DNA from: Botryllus schlosseri
Taxonomy: Eukaryota
DNA: 64,000 bases
Assembly (NCBI GenBank): GCA_051294905.1
Contig: CM119375.1
Coordinates: 9,734,001-9,798,000 of the forward strand
Reading direction: 5' to 3'
Shown: positions 21,101 through 57,078 of the stretch, piece after piece
How the letters are laid out: every line of letters starts with the position of its first letter
Numbering within the stretch: position 1 is the stretch's first letter
Position numbers and translations under genes: made by a program
Notes under the pieces: generated by a model
Databases searched by the model: none
Told to the model about the DNA's origin: nothing
The model's input: the letters and a program-made list of their open reading frames with translations, nothing else

Positions 21101-24100
21101 AAAGTAGTTTTGGGGGCACCGACACTGCGTAATACATCCATATCTGCTGACAAGGCCTGGCCTACCTTTCAGGCCTTGAGTTTTGTACGTCTACTCCGCC
21201 TTGAGAATCGCTACTTTCACTTGTGCTAGACTAGAGAATAACTGCGCCGCATTCCTTCTACTTTCATGTGCCATCGGTGAATAGTGTTCCCATTCGTGAG
21301 TATTTCAACGTATTGTATATACAATACATAGCGTATAATAGTTTAGGCCTATAGAACGAAGCTCTGTATTGTCACTTGTCATTGCTTGAGTTTTATACCT
21401 GCCTGCGTGAATATAATCCTACGTGACGTGTCTGGGTTCAAGCAAAGTAGCGTCACGAAAGCATGGCCTGGGTGACTCAACGAACTTCCTCTTTTAGAAA
21501 GTATTGTTCGCGACTGCTGCCCGAGTGCCCGTGCCCGTGTGTTAGGAATAGGAATCGGTATTAGCATCCAACCAGGGTTCAATAATTCAGCGCGACTATG
21601 CTGCAACTGTTTTGCAGCAGCCTGCGCTCTCTGTTCTCACTTTCATTAGGAGCCTTGAAGGGCATAGAAAGCGACAAGTACACTGCGTTATACGCAAGCA
21701 TGCAGGCACTGAAGTTTGAAAATGATGGCAGCCGTTAACCCGTGGGGAATTTGTAACAGGCGACGCCTGTACGAGATGTATTCGTTCCGCACCGTGCGTC
21801 TCCCTTACTGAAATATGCATATTGCATAAGCCACTGAGCTATTCAGGCTCTGCTTCCATTCGATTGTGATGCGACATTGAACGCATCGTGCTGTGTATAA
21901 ACGAGTTAGCCGTACGTCGTCAGGAAAACGCAAGGTCATTATAGCGTGCGCTCTGATACAATGCTCATTGTCATGACGGATGATCTTTACATTACAATTT
22001 CTGTTCTGAAAGGTTTAACTAACAAAAGAGTGTTTCTTTGCTGTTCAGGGAGAAGATACAGCTTCAGAAGAAGATAGTATGGGTACGTGCTATGATCTTC
22101 AGTGGGTGTGTTAGGACGCTGTATTGATCTTTTCTTCCTTTCTCGGTAAAGCCGACGTTTTGAAGTCAAAAGTCATCGTATTTGTTGTCGGTAAGTATGC
22201 GCGTTGCGCACTTTCTGCATTTCAGATTATCATCGACAATGAAACTTGATTTGTTTTTACTGATGATGAAGTCAGGCCGAAAAGTGTCTTCATTTCTGTA
22301 ATGTTCACGCGGTATGAGTACACTCCGCTAATGCGCCGCAATTGTTTCCGACAATAGGCGGCCCCGGCTCGGGTAAAGGAACGCAATGCGATAAGATCAA
22401 GGAAAAGTACGGGTTCACGCACTTCTCGTCCGGAGATCTGTTGCGAGAAGAAGTCGCCTCCGGATCCGAGAAGGGAAAAGAGCTGAGCGCCATAATGGAG
22501 CGGGGCGACCTTGTACCGCTGGTACGCACGGCGTGGCAATTTTTTCTTTGGGATCCTTAGTTGTGTTTTTTTCGCGACCACTAATGACTTGTATCGTCGC
22601 AGAGCACCGTCCTTGAGCTAATAAAGAAGAACATGATCGAACAGGCGGCCGACTCCAAAGGCTTCCTGATCGACGGCTATCCGAGAGAAGTCCAACAAGG
22701 AATTGAATTCGAGAATACGGTACTATATCTTAACCGATGTCCTCTATGCAGCTTGCTATATGTATATACGGAGTTGAAAAAGAAGACAAATCCTTGCGCA
22801 ATGATAAGGGAAACGTCGGATTGGTACTGAAAAAGGAGAGATTTTATTTTCATCTTATCGAACACAGTAAATTAAGTAACCCTTGCCTGGGATTTTAACG
22901 CTAACGCGAAATGACTGACGACACTATAAGTGCAATTTTTGGAAATATATTTATCGAAATATATTATGGTGACTCGTGAGACACAGAGGCAATTTCGACC
23001 AGCTATTATGACACTTTCACTCGTGAGAGTGACCCGAACCAAAAATCTGAAAACTATACTTTCTATTTTACTTAATCCAAACTGTCAAAAGTAAGTAGTT
23101 TTGCCGAAGAAATTGTGAAGCAGAAGTAGTCTAAAGGCGTAACCACTTGAGTAAGTATAGTGACAGTAGGCAAAACTTGAGCACTCCGAAAAATAGAAGT
23201 ACTTCGCCGCTGATCACCTATGTTGTTGTTGTTTTACTATTCATGGTGTTTCGACCGCTATGGTCGTTTACACCAGTCCAATATTTCTGATTGTGATTCC
23301 TAATCCGCTGGCTTCCAGCACGGCCCGCTTACGCTCGACGCCAGAGATTCCCAACCGCGGTCTCGCAGCCGCATGCTGTTTGTTTCTTGGAATAGTTATA
23401 GTCAATTTTTGCATATGAATGCTAAAATGAGGGATAATGGTTATACCTAAAGCTGTCCAAGGCCGCTTCTGAAAACCGGGAAAGAGAATTCTTGCAGACT
23501 ATACTAGCGTCAAACCCATGGATGAATAGAATACCCGTCTGACTTGGTTAGATATCTTGAGTTCTGCTGGTCATACACCATTAAATATCGTCTCTGTGAA
23601 GAGCAAATTTCGACACAATTTTACTAACATCAAAATAACGGCTCATAGTCAGGTAGAAATTGCAATACTTCCAATATTACTGAGCGTGTAATCCACCGCA
23701 AACTTGCGCATTAAGTGATGGAATGTATAAAGAGCTGTCACATAACGACATAATAGTATGTTGTAGTCGAAAGATATGCACTTTCAGTATATTTCAATGT
23801 ATTGCACTAGGCAATCTGCGTCTATCAATGCTAAAATAACCGATATAGAATCTATGAAAGTCTATGTGCATTGTGCATGCTTTTGAATTAGCTAGATGGT
23901 GAGATCCAGAAGTAGCCTAGCTACCTTAAATTTTCGTTTCAAGTAGCCAACTCGAGTGTTTTCATGCGGCTCCATACGTACTCTGAAGTTTGAAATGCGG
24001 CTTCGACATCCAAAAAAGTTTGGAACCACTGCTCCAGGCCCTGCAAGACCCCGCTTACGCTAATCACCTGTGTTGTTTTCACCATAACCCGACATGCAGT

Positions 24101-24791
24101 CAGTCTCATGCATTGATATTGAAGCATTGCTCCAGTAACACGGTCGCCATGATCGCGCAGATTCCAAATGCCGGAACTTCCCATCTCTTAATAACTGCGT
24201 TACGCAGATAGCCCCGTGCTCGTTCGTTCTCTGGATCGATTCCTCGCAAGACACGATGGTGAGCAGGCTTCTGAAGCGGGCCGAGACGAGCGGACGCGCC
24301 GACGACAACGAAGAAACTATAAGGAAGCGCTTGAAAACCTTCGTCGAATCCACGGAGCCAGTTATTACCTACTACGAAAAACAGAATAAAGTGCGACGGG
24401 TGAGTGTCGCGCATCCGGAGGTCGTCAGTGACTATGTGCTTCTGCGTTACGCTTCTACTTATAGTACTAAATCGAATGGTTTTCTTGCACGACTAATTGA
24501 CCAGTCTTTAGGCAACAGGCCTTACATTTCACACTTCGAATTTTGTATAGTAGAGAGTAGTTTTGGGATAATGTTGCTGCGACTCAACATCAACATTTCC
24601 ACTCCCTCTAACTCTTGAGAATGCCAGCTCCAAACCCGTAACCCAGCAGCGACTGGGATCCGGACGCTCCAACACTATATGCTCTCTCGTCGGTACGTTA
24701 TGAAAGTTTTTGCGTTGCTTTATAGATCAATTCGGAGCAGAATGTGGACGACGTGTTTGCCGAAGTAAAAGCCGTGTTTGATCAACTATGA
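18104..24791 (+). CDS. AK5: Adenylate kinase with an AK5-like N-terminal Dpy-30/RIIa-type docking domain and a single AK1-like catalytic domain (10 exons, 375 aa)
   Basis: Exons 18104-18169, 18236-18407, 19298-19366, 19431-19639, 22049-22082, 22152-22190, 22358-22521, 22603-22719, 24208-24399, 24726-24791. All introns are GT-AG with compatible phases; total 1128 nt. The N-terminus [34 protein letters not shown]...VQWDSFV matches the AK5 N-terminus. P-loop [21 protein letters not shown], and [22 protein letters not shown]. Confidence 0.9.
20326..21012. mobile_element. MITE in AK intron 4, possibly PIF/Harbinger-like
   Basis: TIR GGGCGGAGATCATAAAGTT...AACTTTATGATCTCCGCCC. 3-bp flanks tta / ttg. 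Confidence 0.6.
23221..23330 (-). mobile_element. 3' part of the same SINE family as 13000-13275
   Basis: The reverse complement reads ...TGGTGTAAACGACCATAGCGGTCGAAACACCATGAATAGTAAAAACAACAACAACA, homologous to about 13205-13275. Confidence 0.75.
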
Positions 24792-33940: not shown

Positions 33941-35446
33941 CAATGTTCCCTCTAATTTTTCACGAGTCTGCGCAAACACGCCAACTCACTGCGCAGGCTC
34001 GTGGACCACAGTGCGCAACCAGGCCCCCCATGGAGTGATATACTGAACTTCTGGGGGGCTTCGCCCCCCAGACCCCCCTTCGGGCTGTACGATTTCTGCC
34101 GGTACTTATCATCTGCATTGTGGTTGCGTCGCCTAAAAGCGCGAAGCGCGAAAGATTTATATGATTCATGACTGAATCGGTCAATATGATCGGGAATTGC
34201 ATATATATATTGCTATCAATTTTTATCCTCTTTCTGCTCACATAATCAGGTTTACTGGTAGAGTTGATCAAGTGAGGTGTGTTGGAAAAGGTAGGCCCTC
34301 TAAATAATAATATAACTTCTTCGGGCGTACTAGTTGGTATATTGACTTCATTACATGATGCCATTTCGTGACCTTCTATCTACTTTATCAAAAGATATTG
34401 GAATAGGCCAAACGTACTAAACTAGAAGACGCACACGATTTCAAATTGATATTTCTTTATTAGCAAATAATGTTCCTTCGATATGGCATTTCTCTTGTTG
34501 TGGGACTCGGATTGCCAGGTCAGAAACATTTGGCGCCAGCTATTTAGGCGCATATGAACAATTAAAAGTATGTATATATATCGAAGTACATCGAAGTTGT
34601 CGGTCAGCACAAGGGCAATCCTTTTAGGCCAAGGTTTTCTCACTGCTGATCGTTCTGGCGCACTTCTCGGAATCGCATGTTACATAGCCTAAACTTCATA
34701 TGTCTTGGTGCGTCGTGGCGCGGTAATAGCCGACGCCCAAGTGCCCATTTCTATAAATCACGTGTATTTTTTGTTGAGGAAAGGGTACCCAATAATAAAA
34801 TATTCAACAACATTAAATCGCGCACAGCGCGAATTTTTTTTAAAAAGTTTAAAAAAATACATCTTGATTTATGTTAATTTACAAAATAATTTTGGGCCCC
34901 CTTCGAGCTCGGCCCTCCAATCGGGGGTTTGGGGTGCTGCAGTTACGGTCCTGAGTATATCTTACGCAATGTTCAAGCCACGCGGAGAATAATATTTGTT
35001 AGTTTCTCGCAGATTAACTTCGAGCTAGCCCATTGTTATTTATAACTTTGTTAAACCATGTTATTTCGCCATTCCCAAAAAATAATGCGCTATTGAAATG
35101 ATATCGGTATCACTCACGCGTACGAGACCATACTAAAAGAAAAATCTCTTTCGTGGGGCGCACGTGATCGCAAATTCTCATTTCTTCATGGAGCGCAGTA
35201 TTTACCTTTGCGGGTCGCACTTGTACCTCGGTTTGAGACTTCAGTGATAACACTATTTGCCCCTGGCAATGTTTCCTCTAATTTTTTCACGAGTCTGAGC
35301 GCCTGCGTGGTCCATTGGACAACAGTGCGCAACGACTAAAAAAAAACATCACTTCGGATTTTTTGTGCGCAGCTTAGATTTTCTGTGCGCAGAGACCGTT
35401 TCAGCACTGCGCATTTGCGCACGTGCGCAGCTTAGAGGGAACATTG
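33941..35446. mobile_element. Composite hAT element with two left ends
   Basis: TIR CAATGTTCCCTCTA...TAGAGGGAACATTG. Perfect TSD attgtgac (33933-33940, 35447-35454). A second left end lies at 35267. Contains a copy of the 11271-12254 family. Confidence 0.8.
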
Positions 35447-36005
35447 ATTGTGACCCTGACCAGAGAGCCATATGGGATTACAGCTATTTCAGGATACATT
35501 GATTTCGATTTTAACAGGTCTGTAATGAATATTAATACTTTATGAAGTTGATAAATATATAACTTCACCCATCATTGCTGGTTAAGATTTTTTAGAAATT
35601 TTGAAAACTTCAGTTACGCTTTATTTCTATGGCGATTTAAACGTGCTTAGACTGTGATTGAATTGAAAGTGCAAGTTCTTCAGCTATGTATAGTTGTAGG
35701 TGTAGGTGTAGCATACCACATTTTATGTATCACAATATTATTGTATAAAAACTGTGAGGTATAGAGCATGCAGCAAACAGGATGTCATCGATTTGCAATT
35801 AAATTTGCAATTGAATGGAGTTCCATCCGTTTTGTTTGTTGTATTTCAGTGTTTATTGATGAAAGTAGTCAAGTACTATAGGCTAGTGTACATGTGCATA
35901 AGTTATATCAGCTGAAGTTGACTTGATCATCAACTAAAGATAACTCTACAATGCGTTCAGTTCATTGAATTGAGCATCGGCTAGTGTTCATATTGAAACT
36001 GAATC

Positions 36006-39000
36006 ATGGAAAAACTGATCAAGTCCGTCAACAACATCAAGCTGTATTACGCCAGCGAAGAGGATGATCCAGATAAAGAAACACTGCCAGTTTCAACTAA
36101 AAACGAAAGGCAGGAATGCTGCAAAACGATGACAGAAACAGTTCTGTCGAATGCCATCAAGACGAATTCCGACTATCCCACATATTTAGGGATAACGCTA
36201 GAGACGCTGCTTCTGTGCTGCAAAGATGCCGAGGCAGACGTTCGCATCGCCGCTGAAGAGTCAATCAATCGCATCATCAATGGCACGGAGGAATCCCATT
36301 TCAGCAAGGTACTCATTGAGTTTTATAAAGAAATCAAACGGAATGGATCCAGCAGAAGCTTACGAGCAGCCTTGTCACGCTTCTCCAACCTAGCTCACCG
36401 CATACGGCCAAGCAAATGTCGTCCGTATATCATGGGGTTGATTCCGGTGTTTATTCAAATTTGTTCCCGTGAAGACGAAGGTATCCAGGAATGCTTATCA
36501 ATTTCAATTGCGAAAATTTTCTCTCTTATCGGATCGTTTGCGTCTGAAACCGAAGTGAAAGATTTAATCAACGCTTCCAAGAAGAATCTATCTCACAATT
36601 CAGCGGCGATAAGGAGAAACGCAGCCTCTTGCATTTTTGAGGTGGTGAATAACTGCAATAAAAGAAATGAGATCTTGTCAAGCACTCTGTCCGATTTGTT
36701 GAGTCTTTTCTGTGATACAGTCAAAGAAACTAACCACGCGCTGGGTGTAATTACGACACTTCGACACCTTGTCCCAATTATCGCGACACAAGATACAAGC
36801 GATATCCGACGTACCGGGAGTTTTGGGTCAGAAACCAACGCCAGTTTCAATGTATCATTTGAGTCGCTGGTTGTCAATATATATGAACTGTGTTTGCGTC
36901 TTTTGCATTCGGAAGATCAAAATATCATTACTGCATCGTTGGAGACTATGCAGGCTCTGCTCAGGCTCCCTTGTGATCTGCTGAGGAAATTGCTAGTGCA
37001 CGAGGCGTTACCGGAGACTCAATTTTCCAAAGATGTAGCACGGCATATTCTACCCGAGATGGCAATTTCACCGTCAGAAATGAAAAATTCACAAGACCAA
37101 CAAAACAAAGTGATTTCATCCGTACAAATCTCTGAGCAGACCCTGGAATCTGTTGATCGGAGTGAGGAAGACATTGAAATTCCAGAAAATCTGTCTGGCT
37201 CGAATTTACCAGGACCCGATGACACTGAGATGGCGCTTTGTCCTTTGAATGATCTGACACGACTCCTTTGTGAAAAAGTTCTGCAAATCGGCGTGGAAAC
37301 TAATAAACATGTGAGAGTCAGTGCGAAAAGCTTAGCTCTTTCCTGCGTCGGCACCATCCTAAAAATTCGACCGGAAATGATGTTCGTTAAGGTCAACAGT
37401 AAAAGCGAGTTGAAGGTTCAAGAGGTTATGACCTTTGGTAATTTTTACGATCCGCAAATTCGCGGGTGCGTCTTGTTGTTGATCAGCCAATACCTTGATT
37501 CCGCCCTCACAACTTCGAAAGGTGACTACATGAGCTGGGTTGATAGCGGAGATAGTACTATTTCTATCGATGGACTTGTTGATGACATCCGTATCGGTAT
37601 GATGGACGAATCTACGGTTTGCGTACGGGCCGCGATTCAGGCCGCATCTACATGCCTGCAGTCACTCCGGTGGACTGACTTTGCCCATCTTGGTGTGAAG
37701 TTAATGGAGCAGCTGCTTATTTTGACCAATTCATCTTATTGGCTTGTTAAAGTGGACGTACTGGATGCGTTAAGCGATGTCAACATCCGGGAGATACTCT
37801 TTCCGCGTGAGACTTCACACGATATGAAAGCGTCAAATAATTACGATTTGCTGTCTACTCTTTGTGACGAAATAACGCAGGCCGGATTCAATGCGCTCGG
37901 AGATAAGGACAGTCGAGTCAGGAAATCCGCCTCGACAATGCTGGTGAAGAGTGTGGGGCAGAAAGGTTTTGTTATCAGCGCGGTAAAATGTGACATGGCC
38001 ACTTCGCAAATCGCGGAAGTTTGCGGTAAATTTCTAATAACGGAAGGGTCTTCCGACGACCAATCTCCGAAGGCTTCTGCGAAAAGTCTGTTGAAAACTT
38101 ACAGAGGATTTGAGGTTTCGAACGAGGTGTCTTACGTCGCTCACAATCTATCGTCTTTGGTCGGTAAGGTTTCGGAATTATTGTCGTTCTCAACTTCCAA
38201 GCATCTGGTACAAGGCTGCATTCAAGTTCTTCTGACTCTGTCCACGGAGTACGCCATATCAAAACATCCCGCGTCCTACGACTGTCACTTTTGCACCGAT
38301 CCAAAATTGCACGAAGAACGGCAACAAACCGGCTTGTTAACGACACTGTTGTCTTTGATAGATTCTCACTGGCCGCCATTGGATATAGGGGCCTACGCCA
38401 ATGCCGTAACGCTAGCTGGGAATTATATAGCAGGAATCGCTTGTCACGGGTTTCAAATAGTAGGCGCTAACCCGAAATTGACAGGGTCCGATAGTCTTCT
38501 CGCTGCCAAAGGTGCGAATCCGGAAATCGCAACGTCTCTGTCGGCGTTCAAAGATCAGAAAATCGGAGCGCTCGCGTTACGTTTTTTCACGCATATCGCG
38601 AAACTTTTGTCGATGCTCCATCACGTCATCTCAAACTCGGCACCTTCTTTACCCAATAAAAGCGTGTTGCAAACCCTACAGTCCGGAACTCTACCCGGTA
38701 ATTTGAAGAAGAAGGATAAAGGCGACACCAAAGAGATAGCCGGGGTTTCTAAGACGCACAAGAAAACTTCTTCGACCGGGAAAGCAACTCAGGATGACAA
38801 TGAAAAACCAGCTAAAAACGCGCACGCTCTCATTTTCAGCTTCGCGCACTCCAGAGTACACATGAGACTGTACGATACGCTGTTAGGCGCGTACGAAACC
38901 TACAAGACCACGCTCGACATCGACGAAGTCGACAAATTCTCGCTGTTTCTCGGCACGGTGCTGGACGCTTTCAGTCAACTCTTGGAAATTATCACATTCG

Positions 39001-42000
39001 ATGATATCGAAAAATACGCCGAAGATATCTTGACGTACTTGAAGACCGTGTTCACTGTCGCGCCAACAATGACAGTGCAGACGGTGCAGCAGCTCTTGAA
39101 AGGCATATTCGGTACTAATCTCGTCAACCAACTAGACCTCGACGACCAAACAGCTGTTAAAATCAATACTGCCGCCGGCCGCGACTTGCAACGCCACAAA
39201 GCCACCTTTTACCATCAAGCTTTCCACCGGCCGCTGAACGATTTCACCATGGCCATTGCCAATTCGTCCTTTCACCATTACCTACAACAGGAGAACGCAC
39301 CCAAGGCCAGCTCGGGTTGGTTTGGTTCGATTAAGAAGAAAGTGGAACAGAAGTTGAATATGACGGCGAAACGATCGAAAGGAGACAAGGCGTCGATACA
39401 GAGTTACATCAGACTATTCGAATCGATCGTGATCAAGTCGCTGAAAAATTACACGATGACTAGTTCAGCAGAGTTTCAAAAGCACGTGTTAAACCTTTTA
39501 GCGCAGCTTGTGCAGCTTAGGGTTAACTACTGCCTACTGGATTCGGACATGATTTTTATTGGGTTTATCGTGCGGCAGTTTGAGTCTATCGAGAGCGGGC
39601 TAGTTCGGAATTCGACTGTGTTGATACCGCATGTGTTTTTCTTTCTTGTGCTGCTCTCGTACGAAAAGCACCATTCGAAAAGCGTAATCGCAATGCCAAA
39701 AATAATCCAGCTATGCGACGGAGTGATGGCGGGAGGCTGCGACGCTGCAACACACGTGATACCGGCACTGCGTCCTATAGTCCACGATTTGTTCGTGCTG
39801 CGTGCCGGGCTGCGGCAGGAAGCCGCGTCCGATTTAGACACGCAGCGTGAGGTAACGCAGAGCATGCTGTTCAGGATCGTGGTGCATCCCGAGGCATTGA
39901 GGATGGTCACCACCGTGTTGCAGTATTACAGGAAGGAAAGTCCGGAGCAGTGGAAGAAATACTCGAGGCAGGTTACAGACGTTCTGCTGCCGATGATGTC
40001 GCACTCGAAAGTGCGAGTGGGGTCGCGCTCCGACACGATAGTTTTGCACAGTCTGCTAGAGGCTTTGTCTCCGGCCGCGTTGCGCCCAATCGATCTTGTC
40101 CTTAATATCTTCTTCATGCTGCCTACGGATTTAGCGTCGTTGACAGATCACCAGCGGTGGATAGTGAAGACTAACGCGCTCTCTCGCGTATTGCTTTGTC
40201 AGTTGAACGAGGATTTTCTACTCCAGAGGATACAGGAGATGTGTGTCGACCCCGATGCTTTCGCTAGCGGTATTTTGGCGGTAATGAAATCAGGGTGTGA
40301 AGAAAGCGTTGACGCAGTCGATCAGATGCGCGGTGCGGAAGCCTCGCCGCCTGCGGAAGAAGTTTTCGCCAAAGTATGTCTGCAAATAGTCGGTTTCACG
40401 ATTGAACGTGTAGTCTCTGAGACTTTTGACCCGGTGAAAATCGACAGCAAGGAAAATGATGTGGAATTGCTCGCGGATTTGTTGAGCGAGTTCATACTGT
40501 CGCTCACGTACATCGGCAGGTGTGGTAATTTCAAAAAAGTATCGGGAGCGATGCGTAATTTGCTGAGCGAGCAAGAGCAAGACGGGAAGTTTTATTCGTC
40601 TGTTGCGTTGTGTTCCTTTTTTCAAGAAGCTGCCTCCAAGTACCCGATCGTGTCGCTGTTTTGGTCACAATTTCTGGCTTGCGTCGGTTTCATGGACCTC
40701 GCGCAGTGGGGTAAATTGACGGGGAAAAATTCTCAGTCCAGCGCCAGCATGCCGGTTTTGAATGTGGGCATGGTGCATCGCGGCGCCGTGATTATGTTAG
40801 CCGATTACGTCTGCCAAAATCAATCAGAGGTGGAAGCGATGTCGTGGCTTATCGTGAATCACGTCAAGGAGGTTTTGACTTTGCACGGAGAACCGCCTAT
40901 CCAGGACTTTATCAGCGTGATACACAGGAATTCCGCGGCCAGTCGGTTATTTGTGGAGTCGATCATGACTTTGTTTGCGCGCGGTGACAAGATTAAGACG
41001 TCGTTGAAACAGCGACTGTTGGGTTGCATGTCGGGACTGCATTTGAATCAGTCAGATTTAATCGTGGCTTTGCTGCTGTCGGAAGACTGGTTCGTGTTTT
41101 CACCTGTTATCGCGATTTCCTGTTCCGCCGAGCGTTTGGCTTGCGAACGGTTCGAAATGATAATGGTGCGGGCCTCTGAAAAACAAGGCTCTGCAGAGAA
41201 CGAAGCTTTACTGGCGAGAGTAACTGAACTTCAACGGGACTTGGGCAGATGTGAATCAATCCCAAGACTCGGCAGGCTTGTTGGCTTATCAAACAGACTG
41301 AAGCATCTGCTAGAAACCGGGGAGGATGACCCAAAATCGGCCCGCCGTCCCAATGTTAATACGAGCCCTGGTTTTGTGAGCGAGCCCGACCAAACGTGGT
41401 TTAAAAGTCATGTAGACGACTCGATTATCAGAAATTATCACGGCCGCGATTTGGCAGTTCTGTTGAACGTGTTGGATTACGAAGATATCATGGAGGTTTT
41501 TCAGAGGGACGCGTTTGATGTTGAGAAGTTGGACGAGTGCTTACGTTTTGCTTTTCGGGATATCGCCCAACCCAATGATGGAATAGCGAGAGACGTTTCT
41601 AGCAGTTCTCTTTTGAGTGCAACCGTCACTGCTTTGGTCGCGCATCTCAAATCTTTCGTGGATCAACTTCCTGAAATGGACGCGACATTGTGTGAAAATA
41701 CAGACGCTCCGACCATTAGTGTTGAAGGCGACACTTCGATGTCACAATATTGGAGGTCATCGTTGGCCGTTTTTGACGTTGTGCAAAATCAAACTCTTGT
41801 CTCCGTGTTGGCAAAATCTTTTACGCGATGTTTGATGTGGCAGAAAGCGATCAGTTATCAGTTTCCCGGTCTCGCCGAATCTGACGCAGATCTGCTGAAA
41901 CTGGTTGTTTCCTTTCATCAGTATCTAATCTGGTGCGTGTTACATTCGAAGACTATCGACACATACGTTATAACGACTTGTTGTGATTTTCTACATCAAG

Positions 42001-44555
42001 CTGTGTCCGTTGTGAAGATTCGAAGAATGTTTTTCGATGCTGCCAACGTCTTTCACCCCACTGTCATCACCAATTCATTGTACGCCCTTTACAGGCATTT
42101 CACCGAGAACCTGGGACTCTCGAACAGCCAAAGTTCCGTCGTTTTCGACGCCGTGTTTTCGAAAAACAAAGTTTCGCCCTTGTTTACTGTTTTGAAAGCG
42201 TGTCAGCTGTTAGATGATGTAAACGCCAACTCTCTCGTACCGGCCGTGCTTCGAAAATCTTTAGAGAAGTCAATGAAATTGGTCTTGTGCCACCCGCTTT
42301 TTAACCAATTAGCCCGCGTGCCGCCTCTTCTTATCAAAAGTGATGTGACTGTCGAAGAAATCAAAGCTATCGCGGACGAACCTCCGGCCAGTTATTTATC
42401 GGAGAAGGACTTGTTGCAAGGATTCGTGTCGCGTATCAACGCGATCGGGTGGACCAGCCGAATGCAATTCGAGGAAACGTGGACGACCCTTTTAGGAGTG
42501 CTGGTATCGCAGCCTATCGGGGACATGAGCCAAAACGCGGCGCCTGTCGATGAAACTGCAATACAAGTCAGCTGCTTGACAATATCATCTTTAACGGCTT
42601 TGGTGGTGATGGCGTCGATGAAGCCTTGTGGCGGTCAACCGTGGTTAGGCGCGTATCCGAATGTTCCGAGACGGAATATGAGACCAGCCCCAGATAGTAA
42701 GATCGGGCACGAACTCAATTCGATACAATGCGTCGTCGATAAGGAACTAGATGAAATACTGCTAGCTGATTCGTTGGGGCAGCAGTTTGAAAGGTACAGA
42801 GTATCGTCCCACTGTATGATTGTGCAAAACCTAGATCTCGTCGCGCAAGATTTCTTGCAATCAAGGTTAGAGTTGAATCTTGAGAGGGCGGACCGATCGC
42901 CTTTGCATTACGGTATCGGACAAAAATCGGTGAATTCGTTTTGGGCGATTCAAGGCATTTCCCATGCCGAGGAAGATTCGATCCAGGATTCTAGTGATGA
43001 TGAAAGCGATGCGTCCAGTACAAAGATGAATGACGAAAACACAGCCGATGCCTCTCAAGAGCTGACTGTTGTGCCGCGTGTGACTCCAACTGGTGGCGAT
43101 CCGTATCACGAATCTGTTGATGTGCACTCATGTATACAATTTCTAATCGATTTGTACTCGGAATGGTTTCGTTCCGCCAGCACGACCCCGGTGTCGAACC
43201 AACAGTCTGGCACCCCAGTTTCGTTTCGGCTCCCGCGGCAGTTTCTCAACGAGTGTCTCCGTTCGCTGATCCTTGTGTCGGATTTCTTTGTGGACCGTCA
43301 GCAGCTCGAGTGGATGTTTGCCTCTCTGAATTCGCTACAGTCGGTACAGCCTTCGGAAGACGACGTCATGCTGCAGTATCTCGTTTTGGGGATGTGCAAG
43401 TCGGCCGCGATTTTGGGACTCAACAGAAAAAGCTGTGACGTATTACACGGAATGTTGGACGCCGCATTCTCGTCGACTGTGATATCGTCGCAAACTTTCG
43501 CTTTGCACGGGGCTCTGTACGTTCTGGAGTCGGAAATCAAAGATTTTATGAAGCCTATCATCGGTCTGATATCGAAATTTGTTTACGACAAGTTACGCAG
43601 CGTAGGTTCGGAAGCAATTTTCGCTTCGCACCAATTTTTGCGGAATATTATCTCCGTTGGATCATACCTCGTCGAAAAGGCGCGGGCTTTCATTCCATCG
43701 GCACACGTTAACGAGATTGTACGTGCGATTATCGATATCTTATCTTCCCCGCGTGCGAAATTAGTATCCAACGATGTGTACGCGATGATGCTGAAGACGC
43801 TGGAATCACTGATAACAAGCTGCAGCGTGTCCGCTGCGGAATGCGAGGCTATTGCGAAATTTGCGAGCGAACAATTTGCGGCTCACTCCGCCCCTGTCAC
43901 GCTGCTGAGTTCATTAAATCTAATGGTAACGTGTTTGTATTTTCACATGTTACGCTTGCCGGATAGTGGTGATGGAGAAGAAAGCGCGTTGGAGTTTAGG
44001 TTGCTCTCGATGGAAAGGATAAGCCTGATATTCGACAAGTTGAAGACCGGGTTTCCTTACAAATCGCGCCTGCTGGTGAGGATTCTCCCTACTCTCATGG
44101 ATAACTTCTTCTCGACGCAAGACATGATGAATAAAATCATCGGGGAATTCGCGTCTGGCACGCATCCGCAACCGGAACTGCTAGCGCATGTGCTGTATAA
44201 TATCTTTCAAATTTTGCACGCGAGAGGGGAAAGCATGGTCGTGTCGGAATGGGTGATGCTGACACTGCGTAACTTCACTCAGAGAACGCCAATCTGGTCC
44301 GCGATATGGAGGCTTTCTTGTATATTCGTAAGCGCGTCGACCAACCACTGGATCAACTCCGCCATGCCGATGGTGTTGAAGGAAGCGAACATGGCGCCGG
44401 AAGACAGGAATTTTGACTTTTTCTATGTGTCCGCGAAAGATTTCTATTCGAACCAACTCATAACGGAGCTGGACAAGCGGTCCTTCGTGTCGACATTCCA
44501 ATCCGTCGCGGAACCCGGTAACTTCTATCAGAACATGTTGGACTTGATCACGTAA
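36006..44555 (+). CDS. HTT: Huntingtin, full length (2849 aa), single uninterrupted ORF
   Basis: N17-like MEKLIKSVNNIKLYY. The N-HEAT matches human HTT (DAEADVRIAAEE; FYKEIKRNGSSRSLRAALSRF...RPSKCRPY; SSYWLVKV; LGDKDSRVRKSA), as do later blocks (RLFESIVIKSLKNYT; LVQLRVNYCLLDSDMIFIGF; GWTSRMQFEETWTTLLGVL; HPQPELLAHVLY). No stop or frameshift over 8550 nt. Confidence 0.98.
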   Translation: MEKLIKSVNNIKLYYASEEDDPDKETLPVSTKNERQECCKTMTETVLSNAIKTNSDYPTYLGITLETLLLCCKDAEADVRIAAEESINRIINGTEESHFSKVLIEFYKEIKRNGSSRSLRAALSRFSNLAHRIRPSKCRPYIMGLIPVFIQICSREDEGIQECLSISIAKIFSLIGSFASETEVKDLINASKKNLSHNSAAIRRNAASCIFEVVNNCNKRNEILSSTLSDLLSLFCDTVKETNHALGVITTLRHLVPIIATQDTSDIRRTGSFGSETNASFNVSFESLVVNIYELCLRLLHSEDQNIITASLETMQALLRLPCDLLRKLLVHEALPETQFSKDVARHILPEMAISPSEMKNSQDQQNKVISSVQISEQTLESVDRSEEDIEIPENLSGSNLPGPDDTEMALCPLNDLTRLLCEKVLQIGVETNKHVRVSAKSLALSCVGTILKIRPEMMFVKVNSKSELKVQEVMTFGNFYDPQIRGCVLLLISQYLDSALTTSKGDYMSWVDSGDSTISIDGLVDDIRIGMMDESTVCVRAAIQAASTCLQSLRWTDFAHLGVKLMEQLLILTNSSYWLVKVDVLDALSDVNIREILFPRETSHDMKASNNYDLLSTLCDEITQAGFNALGDKDSRVRKSASTMLVKSVGQKGFVISAVKCDMATSQIAEVCGKFLITEGSSDDQSPKASAKSLLKTYRGFEVSNEVSYVAHNLSSLVGKVSELLSFSTSKHLVQGCIQVLLTLSTEYAISKHPASYDCHFCTDPKLHEERQQTGLLTTLLSLIDSHWPPLDIGAYANAVTLAGNYIAGIACHGFQIVGANPKLTGSDSLLAAKGANPEIATSLSAFKDQKIGALALRFFTHIAKLLSMLHHVISNSAPSLPNKSVLQTLQSGTLPGNLKKKDKGDTKEIAGVSKTHKKTSSTGKATQDDNEKPAKNAHALIFSFAHSRVHMRLYDTLLGAYETYKTTLDIDEVDKFSLFLGTVLDAFSQLLEIITFDDIEKYAEDILTYLKTVFTVAPTMTVQTVQQLLKGIFGTNLVNQLDLDDQTAVKINTAAGRDLQRHKATFYHQAFHRPLNDFTMAIANSSFHHYLQQENAPKASSGWFGSIKKKVEQKLNMTAKRSKGDKASIQSYIRLFESIVIKSLKNYTMTSSAEFQKHVLNLLAQLVQLRVNYCLLDSDMIFIGFIVRQFESIESGLVRNSTVLIPHVFFFLVLLSYEKHHSKSVIAMPKIIQLCDGVMAGGCDAATHVIPALRPIVHDLFVLRAGLRQEAASDLDTQREVTQSMLFRIVVHPEALRMVTTVLQYYRKESPEQWKKYSRQVTDVLLPMMSHSKVRVGSRSDTIVLHSLLEALSPAALRPIDLVLNIFFMLPTDLASLTDHQRWIVKTNALSRVLLCQLNEDFLLQRIQEMCVDPDAFASGILAVMKSGCEESVDAVDQMRGAEASPPAEEVFAKVCLQIVGFTIERVVSETFDPVKIDSKENDVELLADLLSEFILSLTYIGRCGNFKKVSGAMRNLLSEQEQDGKFYSSVALCSFFQEAASKYPIVSLFWSQFLACVGFMDLAQWGKLTGKNSQSSASMPVLNVGMVHRGAVIMLADYVCQNQSEVEAMSWLIVNHVKEVLTLHGEPPIQDFISVIHRNSAASRLFVESIMTLFARGDKIKTSLKQRLLGCMSGLHLNQSDLIVALLLSEDWFVFSPVIAISCSAERLACERFEMIMVRASEKQGSAENEALLARVTELQRDLGRCESIPRLGRLVGLSNRLKHLLETGEDDPKSARRPNVNTSPGFVSEPDQTWFKSHVDDSIIRNYHGRDLAVLLNVLDYEDIMEVFQRDAFDVEKLDECLRFAFRDIAQPNDGIARDVSSSSLLSATVTALVAHLKSFVDQLPEMDATLCENTDAPTISVEGDTSMSQYWRSSLAVFDVVQNQTLVSVLAKSFTRCLMWQKAISYQFPGLAESDADLLKLVVSFHQYLIWCVLHSKTIDTYVITTCCDFLHQAVSVVKIRRMFFDAANVFHPTVITNSLYALYRHFTENLGLSNSQSSVVFDAVFSKNKVSPLFTVLKACQLLDDVNANSLVPAVLRKSLEKSMKLVLCHPLFNQLARVPPLLIKSDVTVEEIKAIADEPPASYLSEKDLLQGFVSRINAIGWTSRMQFEETWTTLLGVLVSQPIGDMSQNAAPVDETAIQVSCLTISSLTALVVMASMKPCGGQPWLGAYPNVPRRNMRPAPDSKIGHELNSIQCVVDKELDEILLADSLGQQFERYRVSSHCMIVQNLDLVAQDFLQSRLELNLERADRSPLHYGIGQKSVNSFWAIQGISHAEEDSIQDSSDDESDASSTKMNDENTADASQELTVVPRVTPTGGDPYHESVDVHSCIQFLIDLYSEWFRSASTTPVSNQQSGTPVSFRLPRQFLNECLRSLILVSDFFVDRQQLEWMFASLNSLQSVQPSEDDVMLQYLVLGMCKSAAILGLNRKSCDVLHGMLDAAFSSTVISSQTFALHGALYVLESEIKDFMKPIIGLISKFVYDKLRSVGSEAIFASHQFLRNIISVGSYLVEKARAFIPSAHVNEIVRAIIDILSSPRAKLVSNDVYAMMLKTLESLITSCSVSAAECEAIAKFASEQFAAHSAPVTLLSSLNLMVTCLYFHMLRLPDSGDGEESALEFRLLSMERISLIFDKLKTGFPYKSRLLVRILPTLMDNFFSTQDMMNKIIGEFASGTHPQPELLAHVLYNIFQILHARGESMVVSEWVMLTLRNFTQRTPIWSAIWRLSCIFVSASTNHWINSAMPMVLKEANMAPEDRNFDFFYVSAKDFYSNQLITELDKRSFVSTFQSVAEPGNFYQNMLDLIT

Positions 44556-45862: not shown

Positions 45863-46285
45863 TAGGGTTGCATTTAAAACAAACGGCGTTTCAAAACACT
45901 TTGTTTAAAATATGTTTTAAACAGTGTTTTAAAAAAGGCCCTTTTAAAGAAAACTTTGCGTTTTTTAAGCAGTAAAATTATGCCATAATTGTGTCAACGC
46001 TTTGCAAAAAACATGTTTTATGAGCCTACGGACAATTACCACTCGATCTATAGCCGACGTATATCGAAATGGGATGGGTGGAACCCTCAAAATAGTCGGT
46101 TCAACAGCAATAGTACATATATTTCGTCAAAGGATCTATTTTTACCCTATATTGTCAATGTCAATCCACTATGGAATATTCGTGACGTCATGGCTTAAAA
46201 AAAACAATAAAAAACATGTTTTAAATTAGGGCCTTGTTTCAAACATGTTTGTTTTAAATTTATTTTTGTTTTAAATGCAACCCTA
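45863..46285. mobile_element. MITE with TTTAAAACA-rich inverted ends
   Basis: TAGGGTTGCATTTAAAACAAA...TTTGTTTTAAATGCAACCCTA. A truncated copy lies at about 6889-6950. Confidence 0.65.
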
Positions 46286-51680: not shown

Positions 51681-51937
51681 TGATGATTCATAAACGAATT
51701 GCGGGAAGCGCATCAAACCTCGAAGGCATTTAGTGAACACTAATACCTCAATGTGTTATATGTATGCGTTTCGTTGAAACGATCAGCGATTGTATAGGAC
51801 ACGTTTGTCTCCATTAACAGATTACGGTGTACAGTAGTAATCATGTAGCGGACTCATAAAGAGAATAGTCTGGTAATTGTGCCGTGGGAGCGAATGCGGT
51901 TTGTTAGTCGTCCGCGTCTCGCAGTCCGGCGGAGAAT

Positions 51938-52733
51938 ATGAACGGAGTCTTTGACGTGGATGACTTCGTGCCGGGTCTGTTCCATTTGGATTTAAATATC
52001 AACTCCAGAAAATTTTCCAGCTTCGGCAGCCTACCTCAAAAGAACGTTCGGAAAATAAGCTGGTAAGACGACTTCTTACAAGCTTAGACTACGGGCGAAA
52101 TGATTTTACTTAGAGGGGTCGTACGGATGCCTATAGCTTCTATTTGAAGAAGCGATGTGCCCATCTTAGGAGGCTAAACTCCTACCAGGCGTGACTTGTG
52201 ACTTCTAGTAATGTAACCTCACAAAATATTTCATGTACTAGCAGTCTGTTACAAGTGTGACATCTACCACGCGATATATATGCCGAATTTTGCGGGCGAA
52301 TCATCAGGGCAGCTTCATCTCAAGTCGTGTACCAGTGTTAGCATAGCTTATGCCGTGTCCGTGCTGTGTATGTTATTCCGCGAACCTTGATATTTATCTG
52401 ACTAATCCTGCAAGGTTTGACTTATACAAGCCACTTGTTCTGATACTTTTGACCCTGAATGGTTCGACACGAAAGCTTACGGTATCTTTAGAAATTCCTC
52501 AAATGGCTCTACGCCGCGTCACACGGTGTTTACGTCTGACATTCCTCTGTAATGAAACTCTTCTGATATCAGCAAGAGATTCTAATTCCGTCTCTTATCT
52601 CGCCAGCAATGGACAGGAAAACGACGGACGGCGAGCTCATCGGCGAGATATGCTTTTGCGATACAACTCGCTCTGCGCGGACCTCGCCAATGACGACGTA
52701 CCAGACCCGGAGTCGACCCTCGTGTTCCTTGGC
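51938..52733 (+). CDS. Two candidate coding exons of an unidentified gene (partial)
   Basis: Exon A is 51925-52062 (ATG at 51938) and exon B is 52607-52733. Both have pyrimidine-rich CAG acceptors and GTAAG donors in compatible phase. The spliced product is MNGVFDVDDF...RKISCNGQENDGRRAHRRDMLLRYNSLCADLANDDVPDPESTLVFLG. No family recognised. Confidence 0.45.
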
Positions 52734-53290
52734 GTAAGTGGTTTTCCGGATCTGTTCGAGTTGTTCGTATCGCGCGGCTTGTGATGTGCCGCGTAGGGCA
52801 ATGATGCGCGATTATATTTCATGATTGAAGCCTAAATTCGTGGCCGTGTCATTCAATTTCAAAATCGTAATGGTCCCAGAGCGGAGTCATCTTTCTATTG
52901 AGGTATCGTGATGCAATATTATATCGCTTCGGGGCTGTTACGGAATTCCGACATTCGGATGTCTGTTATCGGCGGAAGTTTTTCTTGAACATTCAAATCC
53001 TGTTATGCAAGCTGCTAAGCCAGTGGTTCACAACCTTCTTCGTCTCGTGCCCCCTGTTGTACCCTTCGATAGAACTCAATACGATCGGTTCCTAGGCTTT
53101 TATTAACATAAAAGTAAGCTAGTGTATCTGAATACAACATGGCAATAATACAGAGTTAACGTAGGTACAACTAACAGAAGCGACGCCACACCCAACTGGT
53201 ACAAATGAAATGAATAGTCCCGACGTGAAGGTAATCAGGAGCAATCAGTATAAACACCCACTAGTGGTCAAAAGGGACTGATACACCACA

Positions 53291-53318: not shown

Positions 53319-56300
53319 TTATAAAGAGGATTGTCCATATCGTTCAGGCGCGCGTTTGATTCTAGTTGATCTTCTCAAGGGCGGAGGATCAGCGACAACT
53401 TCTTGCAAAGTTTCTGAAGAATCTTGTTTGTTGCCAACGTCAACCGTAGGTTCAACCAGAAACGAATCGTCGGCCACTGCACGGTCCGGTTCGGCAGCCC
53501 CATCATCGACTGGGTAGGGCTCAGTAGTAGGCGGATAAGGTGCGAGGTCCTTGACTGAGACGGTCGATTCCACTCCAGATGGATGCCGGATCAAGGCATA
53601 TTTGGAGTTAGCTTCGAGCAAATCGACTTCGATTCCGAGCGGATCACTTTTACTTCTCCTTGCGAAGTTCCTCAGCAACACGGAGCCTCCTTGGAGTATC
53701 CAATCTGGAACCGATTCCCCCATCATACTTCTCCTACTGAAATTGAAAAATCTGTCGTGCGGACACGAATTAGTAGTAGTACACAGAAGCGAACGGATAG
53801 AGTGAAGGGCATCAGGCAACACAGCTTCCCATGAACTTTCAGGCAATTTTCGTGAGGCTAAGAGCATTCTTACTGATCTCCAGAGCGTTTGATTCAAACG
53901 CTCACATTGAGAGTTTCCAGTGGGATGGTACGGAGTAGTTTTGCTCGTTGCTATGCCTTTACGGGTAAGAAACGTCGTTACTTCCTTCGATAAGAACGAG
54001 TTTGAACGATCGCTGTGAACATATTCGGGCAGACCGAACAAGGAAAACAAATCAGTGAGACAATTAACAACGGTAGCTGATGTCATATCTCGGCATGGAT
54101 ACGCAAATGGAAATCTGCTGTATTCGTCAATAATTACGAGCAGATACTTTCGAGGTCCTTCAACAGGGCCTTTGAAATCAATACTTATTCTCTCCCACGG
54201 TCTAGTCGATTTAATGAGACGGTGATGGACATTGGATTTATAGAATCGCGGTTTGATTTCGGAGCATATTCTGCAGTTAGCGCAGATCTTTCGGACTTCA
54301 TCTACAGAGAATGGCAAGTTTTTCGCTCTAATAAAATGGTTCAACCGTCGTACTCCGGGATGAGCAAGAGCTTCGTGCACCTGATGGAGAGACAAGCCAG
54401 AATTTGGCAACGAGCAGCAGACACGAGAAAATGTATCAGGAACAACATTCTCAGTACCCGGACGATGAATTATTTCATACTTGAAGGCGCTCAATTCGAG
54501 TTTCCACACCGACAACTTAGCATTTTTGATTTTACTAGCGTGAGTTTTGCTGAATATGAACGACAATGCTTTTTGATCGGTAACGAGGCGGAACTTATTG
54601 CGGTGAAGCAAGTATCCCCATTTTCGTATGGCCTCAATAATAGCGAGAGCCTCTTTTTCAACAATATTGTATTTTGACTCGCATTTGGAAAGAGTATGCG
54701 ACATAAACGCTACAGGTCTGCCTCTTTGACTTAGTATGGCCGCGATAGCCACGTCCGAAGCATCACAGGCAACCTCGAAAGGTTCGTCGTCATATATACA
54801 ACTTAGGCAAGCACCTATAAGGCTATTTTTCAACGATTTGATAGCCTGGAGTCCATCGGTTTTCAACGGAAATTCATTGTTTCGAGTCAATGGTTTCATT
54901 TTTTCCGAAAACGAAGGTATCCATTTCGAATAATAGGCAAACATACCCAAGCAGCGCTTTAAACTTTTTGCATTGTTAGGGATGGGCATATCCATCAAAG
55001 GTTTCAAATGGCAAGGATCAGGCTGAATTTTGTTATGGGAAATAAGGTACCCCAGGAGCGATAACTTTTCAACTGAGAACGCACATTTCTTTTCATTCAG
55101 AGTCAGCCCGTCAGCCTTGGCTGAAGTCATAAAACGTTCCAACCTCTTATCGTGTTCTTTTCTATTTTTGCCATAAATAGTAACATTGTCCAGGTAAGCA
55201 ATAGTACCTTGCAGGTTATGATTTCGGATGAAATTGTCTATGAATCGCTGGAAAGCTGCGACGCCGTTTGTTATCCCAAAAGGCAATCGACGAAACTGGT
55301 ATAAATTACCGTCAGCTTCGAAAGCTGTTAAAGGACGGTCTGAAGGGCAAAGAGGCACCTGATGATACGCGGATTTCAGATCGATGGTGCTATATACCGT
55401 TCCTTTAGCGACTTCATTAACAATATGCTCGATTCTAGGGAGCGGATACGCGTCCAGGGGCGTATATCTATTAATAGTTCGAGAATAGTCGATAACTAAC
55501 CGCTTTTTATGGCGTTCATCTTTCGTCACCAGAACCTGAGCCCGCCACGGAGAGACGGACTTTTCTATCACATCTTCTTGCAGTAATCTTGACACCTCTT
55601 CTTTGATGAATTGGGCGTCGTCGGTGCAATAATTTCTTGATTTCACAGCGATGGGATCGACATTTCTATCAACGAAGTGGAATATCTTTGGCGTCTCTGT
55701 GATCTTAGCGGCAGCGACGGAACAGTGAGAATCATCGATGATCAAGTCGCTTCGAGGCCCGTTGAACTTGAAAATGACGTTCTTGTGAGTTTTCAGGAAC
55801 TCCAATCCTAAGATCACATCCGCGCACAAGTTGTTTACGACTCCGAAACGTGTTTCGCTGTATTTATGATCCTGTATTGTGAATGGCGAAGTAACGTGCC
55901 CCAATACTTTAGAGGTGGAGTCCTTCGATGCCAGAGTAATAGTGGATTCCGGTCCGTGCAGAGGGAGTGCAAGCGAATTAGCAAACGATCGTCTCATAAA
56001 GCATTCGTAGGCCCCCGAGTCGACCAGCGCCTCTATAGTCAATCCTGCTATATTGATGATGATAGCCGAGTATCTGAGTGATTTCGGTACTCCAATCAAC
56101 AGGGAAGCGAGGTCCGCCACTTCGGCGGAATTAAACGTTACCGCACCAGTTCCACCGGCGGCTAGAGAAGCCAAATGAGAGGCTTCATCAGAATCATACG
56201 CTGGCGCAGCGATCTTCCTATTTTGAGTGCCACTTTTGCATACCTTACCGAAATGGCCTTTATATCCACATTTATAGCAATCGGCGTTTTTCGCGGGACA

Positions 56301-57065
56301 GACCTTGCGCAGAGGGTAATGTTGACTGCCGCAATATTGGCACTTCTTGTATGCTTTCGTGACTAATGCAACTTCGCCGGTCCCCTCCGGCGTTATTTTG
56401 ACTTGATCGCTATTAGTCGTCTGTTCAGATCCCACAGCACTCACGGCGACAGGGACGGGCATCGATATGGGCACGTAAGAAGACGAAAATTGCTGAGCTC
56501 GCTCGAGAGATTCGGCTATCTGAACCGCTTTGTCCAATGTCATATCATCGTGCTCCAATAATCTAAGACGAATATTAGGCGAACGTAAGCCAGCAATTAA
56601 GGCGTCGCGAACTGCTTCCTTTTGATGCTCGTCGGAATTTACAGCAGCGAACATGCAATCTTTAGCGAGAGTTAGCAATTTTAGCGAAAAATCCGTGACG
56701 CTTTCTCCTTGATCCTGACGAGACGTTGCCAAGAGGTGTCTGGAGTAGATCACGTTATTCTTTTTCTTGTAGAGCTTGCATAGCGCCTCAAGAGCGGATT
56801 CATACGTAGCGAAGTGCTCTACAAGAGCGAACACATCCGGCGATATATATCCGTATAGAATAGCCAATTTGTCAATAGTCACTTCAGCTGGAGGGTCAGA
56901 AGAGGATCGATTGGGAGCCGTTGAGTTTGAAGCGGAGGCCTGCGCGGCAACTAAGAATTTCCCCAACATCTTCTCCCAATGATTGAATATCTTCTGCGAG
57001 TCAGCCGAGCTTGGCATCACTTCCAAAACTGGCACACGTATGTACTTTTCTTGAGAGAACGCCAT
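53319..57065 (-). CDS. Gag-Pol polyprotein, single ORF (1248 aa from the ATG at 57065)
   Basis: Two zinc knuckles (CQYCGSQH...C; CYKCGYKGHFGKVC), protease LVDSGA, RT (DLKSAYHQ, LPFG, YLDN), RNase H (CDASD, EKEALAI, TDQKAL), integrase (HHCC, IDFKGP, HSDR, GNSQCER). PR-RT-RH-IN order. No chromodomain seen. Confidence 0.95.
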   Translation of the reverse strand: MAFSQEKYIRVPVLEVMPSSADSQKIFNHWEKMLGKFLVAAQASASNSTAPNRSSSDPPAEVTIDKLAILYGYISPDVFALVEHFATYESALEALCKLYKKKNNVIYSRHLLATSRQDQGESVTDFSLKLLTLAKDCMFAAVNSDEHQKEAVRDALIAGLRSPNIRLRLLEHDDMTLDKAVQIAESLERAQQFSSSYVPISMPVPVAVSAVGSEQTTNSDQVKITPEGTGEVALVTKAYKKCQYCGSQHYPLRKVCPAKNADCYKCGYKGHFGKVCKSGTQNRKIAAPAYDSDEASHLASLAAGGTGAVTFNSAEVADLASLLIGVPKSLRYSAIIINIAGLTIEALVDSGAYECFMRRSFANSLALPLHGPESTITLASKDSTSKVLGHVTSPFTIQDHKYSETRFGVVNNLCADVILGLEFLKTHKNVIFKFNGPRSDLIIDDSHCSVAAAKITETPKIFHFVDRNVDPIAVKSRNYCTDDAQFIKEEVSRLLQEDVIEKSVSPWRAQVLVTKDERHKKRLVIDYSRTINRYTPLDAYPLPRIEHIVNEVAKGTVYSTIDLKSAYHQVPLCPSDRPLTAFEADGNLYQFRRLPFGITNGVAAFQRFIDNFIRNHNLQGTIAYLDNVTIYGKNRKEHDKRLERFMTSAKADGLTLNEKKCAFSVEKLSLLGYLISHNKIQPDPCHLKPLMDMPIPNNAKSLKRCLGMFAYYSKWIPSFSEKMKPLTRNNEFPLKTDGLQAIKSLKNSLIGACLSCIYDDEPFEVACDASDVAIAAILSQRGRPVAFMSHTLSKCESKYNIVEKEALAIIEAIRKWGYLLHRNKFRLVTDQKALSFIFSKTHASKIKNAKLSVWKLELSAFKYEIIHRPGTENVVPDTFSRVCCSLPNSGLSLHQVHEALAHPGVRRLNHFIRAKNLPFSVDEVRKICANCRICSEIKPRFYKSNVHHRLIKSTRPWERISIDFKGPVEGPRKYLLVIIDEYSRFPFAYPCRDMTSATVVNCLTDLFSLFGLPEYVHSDRSNSFLSKEVTTFLTRKGIATSKTTPYHPTGNSQCERLNQTLWRSVRMLLASRKLPESSWEAVLPDALHSIRSLLCTTTNSCPHDRFFNFSRRSMMGESVPDWILQGGSVLLRNFARRSKSDPLGIEVDLLEANSKYALIRHPSGVESTVSVKDLAPYPPTTEPYPVDDGAAEPDRAVADDSFLVEPTVDVGNKQDSSETLQEVVADPPPLRRSTRIKRAPERYGQSSL

Positions 57066-57078
57066 GTTGAGATGACCA

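Follow-up and report, generated by a model that had tools for sequence, protein, structure and literature searches.

The window, that is, the whole stretch of 64,000 nucleotides that was analysed (C5:9734001-9798000 of a genome assembly of 495.5 Mb in 219 contigs), contains no N and carries on its forward strand a huntingtin (HTT) coding sequence (36006-44555) that runs from ATG to TAA as a single exon of 2849 codons in the ORF list. From 34 to 46 kb no other ORF reaches 150 aa. The features of the locus are given below by window position, strand and content, with the HTT domains taken from the Pfam set PF20926/PF12372/PF20925/PF20927:

22354..24387, + strand: neighbouring adenylate kinase (AK), ADK domain in at least three pieces (22354-22518, 22582-22719, 24202-24387)
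35300..35499, no strand assigned: very high-copy repeat about 500 bp before the ATG (depth about 6e5 in assembly X16 against about 90 in the flanks), listed as context only
36006..44555, + strand: complete HTT CDS, 2849 codons plus TAA (genome coordinates G000:C5:9770006-9778555)
36006..36065, + strand: N17-like N-terminus MEKLIKSVNNIKLYY, aligned with Styela, Ciona, Clavelina and vertebrates
36207..36662, + strand: Htt_N-HEAT_1, aa 68-219, E=3e-52
36626..37229, + strand: poorly conserved linker, densely polymorphic in the population, with a 6-nt indel at 37065-37071 that keeps the frame
37446..40025, + strand: Htt_N-HEAT, aa 481-1340, E=1e-209
40512..41300, + strand: Htt_bridge, aa 1503-1765, E=4e-46
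41919..44444, + strand: Htt_C-HEAT, aa 1972-2813, E=3e-124
46194..46218, + strand: A-rich patch, a 25-mer 1.64 kb after the stop and the only one within 4 kb past it
51896..52739, + strand: downstream gene with two conserved coding blocks (51896-52063, 52602-52739), collinear with contig L002 of a relative

All four Htt domains (PF20926, PF12372, PF20925, PF20927) were found in their native order and far above the cut-offs. The solved human HTT structures all matched the window protein at E=0 over aa 411-2846, which correspond to residues 678-3131 of 6rmh_A, and the N-terminus was matched by a second stretch. The first residues, MEKLIKSVNNIKLYY, align to the N17 helix of vertebrate HTT. No polyQ tract follows this motif, the longest Q run in the whole protein being 2; since the tract is also missing from Ciona huntingtin (PMC1636649), it is not family-defining outside vertebrates. 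At 0.45-0.49, the ORF is richer in GC than its flanks (about 0.40), as coding DNA is expected to be. The locus is a full-length, intact and single-copy huntingtin orthologue. The original prediction of a full-length huntingtin with 2849 contiguous and intact codons is thereby confirmed by the one ORF, the four Htt domains and the E=0 matches to human structures.

The nearest coding sequence identified lies several kb from HTT on each side (7 kb downstream), so that HTT does not look operonic. Reverse-transcriptase sources lie in the window itself. The neighbouring AK gene had been credited with nine introns; that it keeps introns was borne out by its split ADK domain, in which at least two introns were seen, and the figure of nine is covered only to that bound.

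Copy number, assembly and function of the HTT locus

A protein search of the whole genome returned one HTT locus, and exon-level HMM searches of the whole genome with PF12372 and PF20927 gave nothing beyond this locus at E<=0.01. Searches of the same exon-level type readily reveal the 50-200-aa exons of dyneins, myosins and FAT-domain kinases. A second, intron-containing HTT, for which a search had been suggested, is hence missing from the genome according to the protein search and both exon-level HMM searches.

The genomic reality of the uninterrupted CDS was assessed with X16, an independently made assembly of genome size from this species (depth about 90), which spans the intergenic flank through the ATG, has no joint inside the HTT CDS and covers flank and CDS evenly. 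The stretch is present in the sequence data of seven studies. That an assembly artefact or cDNA contamination put a processed HTT into the genome assembly has next to no probability, because this independent DNA assembly joins the flank to the CDS at normal depth and because the structure recurs in the chromosome-level assembly of Styela clava and in the 20-kb genomic contig of a relative, whose downstream exons are syntenic.

The CDS might also be a silent or neutrally evolving retrocopy of a spliced parental HTT located elsewhere. One observation speaks for this: in the raw bulk RNA-seq data X24, of which 6% was read, the 5' half of the CDS (35.9-40.7 kb) drew no reads; the library carries SMART-type oligos and may be 3'-biased. 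Against it stand the lack of any further HTT signal in the genome at the exon level or otherwise, an 8.5-kb ORF that is intact in four species that span a deep divergence, a dN/dS of about 0.1 and a polymorphism skewed to synonymous changes. We consider a silent copy beside a spliced parent vanishingly improbable, and this reading is effectively refuted. A spliced parent together with a silent or neutral copy was also what the original prediction had named as an outcome that would speak against it; no parent was found, and selection on the copy is strongly purifying.

The usable dN/dS ratio came from one pair of relatives' contigs only (L002 and L003), since the window and its relatives differ by a dN of about 0.2 with saturated dS. 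For this pair dN/dS was 0.07-0.10, and the suggested check on selection thus returned purifying selection between relatives. Among the 40 population variants listed, 23 were synonymous and 17 non-synonymous, none introduced a stop, and 38 lay in the linker (36626..37229). The synonymous share was 57% as opposed to 23% expected at random, and this in the least conserved linker; the sole indel among the variants takes out 6 nt in frame.

Transcription was assessed with the transcriptome-sized assemblies X5 and X9, whose RNA origin is guessed. Both covered the CDS from about 36.55 kb on, with zero depth across 35.5-36.5 kb. When the query was cut to the CDS, the share of sampled words found in these runs rose, in X5 from 0.59 to 0.67, where 0.69 is expected if only CDS words are present. 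The HTT locus is probably transcribed, as judged from assemblies whose RNA label is a guess. An internal transcription start, considered because the X5 and X9 contigs begin about 550 nt into the CDS, is unsupported: the region is 4-6% polymorphic, and the 95% likeness filter probably dropped contigs there. The N-terminus is covered by relatives' transcripts. Judged from these sequence comparisons, the HTT copy is functional and under purifying selection.

Ancestral intron content and age of the loss

Human HTT has 67 exons, and at least 40 are inferred for the chordate ancestor. The window protein was compared with HTT proteins of other ascidians, to which its identity was 69% (P0001) and 68% (P0002; both from Logan), 51% (Styela clava), 42% (P0004), 35% (Clavelina) and 34% (Ciona). 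In the maximum likelihood tree the first four grouped with the window as (P0004,(Styela,(window,(P0001,P0002)))) with 100/100 support, as sister to Clavelina plus Ciona, and this placement of HTT identifies the window species as a stolidobranch, styelid-type ascidian. Contig L003 begins with a Nextera adapter, and L003 and L004 may be RNA or DNA. Genomic evidence of an intronless HTT comprises the window, Styela clava and L002; P0004, the deepest stolidobranch at 42% identity, was not counted.

Coding exons were counted by mapping each annotated protein to its own locus with splicing and exact matches, because exon counting with tblastn missed short exons (32 and 37 blocks). The mapping gave 61 coding exons in Ciona intestinalis (locus span 36.7 kb), 65 in Clavelina (23.6 kb) and 1 in Styela clava. 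The mapper reproduces the 61 exons published for Ciona huntingtin (Gissi 2006; PMC1636649), and the figure of about 60 coding exons in Ciona that was originally given agrees with this count. Of the 60 Ciona introns, 58 are positionally common to Clavelina (within 2 alignment columns), and 39 intron positions are common to Ciona HTT and vertebrates (Gissi et al.; PMC1636649). HTT was therefore rich in introns in the ancestor of these ascidians.

Ciona and Clavelina together have 78 distinct intron positions, and at 76 of them the residues of the window protein align within 3 columns; the alignment shows no insertion of at least 8 aa that only the window HTT has. The removal was thus exact, with no intron retained in frame. 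The coding region has 0 introns here as opposed to 60 in Ciona and 64 in Clavelina, and the most 5' ones are gone too, including the counterpart of the Ciona intron that sits after codon 24. Of the roughly 60 ancestral introns in the HTT coding region, none is left.

The genomic HTT of Styela clava is an 8862-bp sequence (2953 codons plus stop) that translates directly. L002, a 20-kb genomic contig of a relative at about 33% DNA divergence from the window, holds an intact HTT ORF and a further 10 kb downstream; the two coding blocks of the downstream gene (51896..52739) are collinear in both, which shows that L002 is genomic and orthologous to the window locus. As Styela and the closer relative both have an uninterrupted CDS, the loss occurred once, before the split of Styela and the window species. 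With the timescale of Delsuc et al., in which the stolidobranch split lies at about 389 Mya and crown Styelidae at about 197 Mya (PMC5899321), we infer that the loss dates to between about 389 and about 197 Mya, the lower bound applying if both species span crown Styelidae. The comparison of gene structure in related species that had been proposed to date the loss (Styela clava and L002 intronless, 61 exons in Ciona, 65 in Clavelina) accords with the old event originally suggested, in that the single-exon state is common to Styela clava and the closer relative.

Flanks, other intronless genes and the route of loss

No target site duplication (TSD) was evident, the 2 kb upstream and the 4 kb downstream sharing 0 11-mers (3.7 expected by chance), and the A-rich patch at 46194..46218 is not convincing as a poly(A) relic. 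The comparison of the flanks thus agrees with the earlier statement that neither a poly(A) relic nor a TSD is visible. After some 200 My or longer, such hallmarks of retroposition are expected to have decayed.

HTT of Ciona and of Clavelina alike has a PAP2 gene as its immediate upstream neighbour. In the window species the PAP2 orthologue is on C11 and HTT on C5, so the adjacency is absent, and PAP2 is itself intronless. Beside the PAP2 orthologue, where an empty ancestral site was sought, symplekin, GWT1 and TAF1A were found and no Death-domain gene. Nothing in the 10-kb flanks of HTT in Ciona and Clavelina recurs in the window, Styela or L002, and the Styela flanks (10 kb on each side) have nothing in common with the 64-kb window. 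Synteny, also proposed as a means of dating, held in part: the downstream exons of L002 are collinear, and there were no shared neighbours with Ciona, Clavelina or Styela within 10 kb.

Intron loss in HTT was originally read as specific to this gene, and this part of the prediction did not stand. DYNC2H1 (identified by Pfam) is a 4310-aa open frame of 12.9 kb on the minus strand (C3:34514997-34527926); in Styela it is exactly one exon of 12,921 bp and in Clavelina 82 coding exons over 32.4 kb, so that its loss has the same phylogenetic distribution as that of HTT. Further all-or-none cases in the window species are one myosin in a whole-domain single frame (1010 aa), 4 of about 9 members of the Cpn60/TCP1 family (CCT/HSP60; four others are clearly multi-exon), two adenylate kinases in single frames, the PAP2 orthologue (single frame of 278 aa; at least 5 exons in Ciona) and, beside it, symplekin (1203 aa), GWT1 (544 aa) and TAF1A (405 aa). 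Short exons are the rule for the remaining dyneins, myosins and FAT-kinases, most of which have them, and the AK gene next to HTT, used as the intron-bearing control, is split. The loss in HTT is gene-specific only in not being universal. In Ciona, single-exon genes account for 15% of genes outside operons and 38% of those within them (Satou et al., 2008; PMC2760879), and an intronless SPS2 retrogene has been dated to the root of Styelidae plus Pyuridae (PMC4561486).

Single introns could have been deleted stepwise from the genome over a long time, with no RNA intermediate. Intron turnover in tunicates is high (PMC4122922) and the interval was long, the stolidobranch split preceding crown Styelidae by as much as about 190 My (PMC5899321). 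About 60 independent and exact deletions would nevertheless have been needed in HTT, and 81 in DYNC2H1, in a genome where AK and most dyneins and myosins retain their introns; no sampled species has an intermediate state and no indel scars mark the former intron sites, and we regard such stepwise deletion as very improbable. The exact and total removal, the all-or-none families and the repeat case of 12.9 kb argue for an mRNA intermediate and not for serial deletion. A spliced-mRNA intermediate, by retroposition or cDNA replacement as originally proposed, is the best explanation for the exact removal of about 60 introns. That the HTT gene is real, functional, ancient and was de-intronised via some mRNA intermediate is highly likely.

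Such an intermediate could have acted in place, a full-length HTT cDNA or several overlapping ones recombining homologously with the native gene, and later rearrangement removing the synteny. Recombination with reverse transcripts is a textbook mechanism of intron loss (PMC3652778, PMC4122922). It would fit the precise disappearance of the introns with no coding scars, the promoter-proximal 5'UTR that is alike among relatives and the lack of a poly(A) or TSD hallmark of retroposition. The neighbours of the PAP2 orthologue are moreover all intronless, which suggests regional or expression-linked loss in place, and an adjacent intronless run (symplekin, GWT1, PAP2, TAF1A) is easier to explain in this way than by independent insertions. 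However, the model predicts a partial, 3'-biased loss, whereas here about 60 introns are all gone and gene families are bimodal, and the PAP2-HTT adjacency of Ciona and Clavelina is lacking. We regard recombination in place as possible, if somewhat doubtful. The lost PAP2 linkage is itself weak evidence, since tunicate microsynteny decays fast and PAP2, being intronless, may itself have moved.

LINE-type retroposition usually truncates 5' ends, so that it would be unusual for 9-13 kb to be copied in full. A slight preference goes to retroposition at a new site and later disappearance of the parent, given that the PAP2-HTT linkage of Ciona and Clavelina is absent and that the lineage offers a retrogene precedent, and we give this route about an even chance of being correct. 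By this route a spliced HTT mRNA would have been reverse-transcribed in the germ line over its full length of about 9 kb and the cDNA inserted at a new site; the intron-bearing parental HTT would later have been lost, leaving an orphan retrogene, and the copy, having gained or kept a working promoter, would have been under purifying selection since. The event belongs to a lineage-wide pattern in which whole genes, the 12.9-kb DYNC2H1 among them, went from many exons to one, others keeping all their introns. A more far-reaching proposal takes HTT and DYNC2H1 as traces of one discrete episode in stem Styelidae (perhaps Styelidae plus Pyuridae, to whose root the SPS2 retrogene was dated), when single-copy parental genes rich in introns gave way across the genome to full-length cDNAs as long as about 13 kb; we think this unlikely. 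If true, it would imply unusually processive germ-line reverse transcription and integration or recombination, and these genes would be the largest orphan retrogenes described in animals.

Comparison with known systems

A natural and selected single-exon HTT indicates that introns and their alternative splicing are unneeded for the essential function of the gene in a chordate, and a full-length HTT orthologue can here be amplified directly from genomic DNA. All-or-none flips of this size (CDS of 8.5 and 12.9 kb; 60 and 81 introns) constrain models of intron loss and raise the question of which reverse transcriptase copies such mRNAs. HAP40, which is itself an orphan retrogene in amniotes as discussed below, is HTT's own binding partner.

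The huntingtins of Ciona intestinalis and C. savignyi (PMC1636649) resemble the window protein in their four domains, their length of about 2850-2950 aa, an N17-like N-terminus, the lack of polyQ and their single copy. They differ in having 61 coding exons over 36.7 kb, in being SL trans-spliced and in lying downstream of PAP2, as opposed to one 8.55-kb exon and 34% identity here. The closest counterpart is the huntingtin-like gene of Styela clava (XP_039263521.2 / XP_077968526.1, GCA_964204865.2), whose CDS is likewise free of introns and which falls in one clade with the window gene, so that the single-exon state is inherited and not independent. It differs in its protein identity of 51% and in having no common flanking genes within 10 kb. 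In our literature search no paper was found that describes the single-exon HTT of Styela, which is implicit in the public annotation, or that connects huntingtin with a lack of introns or with a stolidobranch. The structure is not unique to the window species, given that the public HTT annotation of Styela clava is already single-exon and that single-exon genes are a known and sizeable class in ascidians. HTT here belongs to the same class as the single-exon genes of Ciona (PMC2760879), yet HTT of Ciona is multi-exon, and the gene lies far above the mean mRNA length of about 1.8 kb in that study.

Orphan retrogenes are retrocopies that replaced their parents (PMC3548309), with HAP40/F8A in amniotes (PMC7725122) and SPS2 in placental mammals and in Styelidae plus Pyuridae (PMC4561486) as examples. 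Like HTT here they are single-exon and functional, their multi-exon ancestor is gone, they lack poly(A) and are under purifying selection; their location is non-syntenic, as that of HTT may be. They differ in scale, at about 1-1.5 kb and 8-18 exons as opposed to about 60 introns and 8.5 kb here (81 introns and 12.9 kb for DYNC2H1), and the relocation of HTT is inferred from a single lost linkage. Single-exon ascidian genes, the public Styela model and orphan retrogenes (PMC3548309, PMC7725122) were all known before, and the present case is an extension of known biology. HTT here is an unusually large instance of complete intron loss, perhaps of the orphan-retrogene type, and the pattern of giant-gene conversion is the part that deserves follow-up.

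Sequence divergence and the surroundings of the huntingtin gene

Individuals of this species differ by 2.5-4% overall, and by approximately 6% in the linker of the HTT coding sequence (window 36626-37229), so that contigs can drop below the 95% likeness filter. In the Logan contig carrying P0001, the closest relative HTT protein, a Nextera adapter remnant was found at the start (L003:1-22), and the first bases of this contig are therefore not biological sequence. The following features were located around HTT in the window:

7463-8317, plus strand: open frame of 285 aa with a homeodomain at its end (PF00046, 7e-20)
35300-35499: very high-copy repeat, 500 bp ahead of the ATG of HTT
53322-57131, minus strand: pol-like retroelement ORF of 1270 aa, downstream of HTT
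59080-60249, minus strand: retroelement ORF of 390 aa with an RVT_1 reverse-transcriptase domain, downstream of HTT

The 285-aa frame is probably an exon of a homeobox gene. The summed depth over the repeat was about 6e5 in the genome-sized assembly, and numerous rearranged joints were present there in other individuals. Both retroelement ORFs sit within a putative region of nested insertions.

Other single-frame genes in the genome

The Cpn60/TCP1 family is bimodal in intron content, with four genes containing the entire 490-position domain in one open frame and four further members broken into many exons of 40-100 aa. Single-frame genes were located as follows (assembly G000):

C7:10230688, C9:19924282, C9:21391512 and C6:21422887: Cpn60/TCP1-family genes
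C8:22962725-22965754, plus strand: myosin, head domain complete within a 1010-aa frame
C13:2940718: CCT-like domain within a 2156-aa frame, possibly PIKfyve-like
C16:16284604: ADK domain within an 1804-aa frame
C11:27204096-27218968 (loci L010/L018): four adjoining single-ORF genes in a row
C3:34514997-34527926, minus strand (loci L008/L015): DYNC2H1, cytoplasmic dynein-2 heavy chain, single 4310-aa open frame

Comparison with other ascidians

The C11 cluster comprises symplekin (1203 aa, minus strand), GWT1/PIGW (544 aa), PAP2 (278 aa) and TAF1A (405 aa), each in one ORF with complete Pfam domains. GWT1 and PAP2 share a strand and are separated by only about 430 bp, an arrangement that looks operon-like. 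In Ciona and Clavelina, the gene orthologous to this PAP2 is located upstream of HTT. The DYNC2H1 orthologue of Styela clava is a single exon of 12,921 bp, and that of Clavelina has 82 coding exons.
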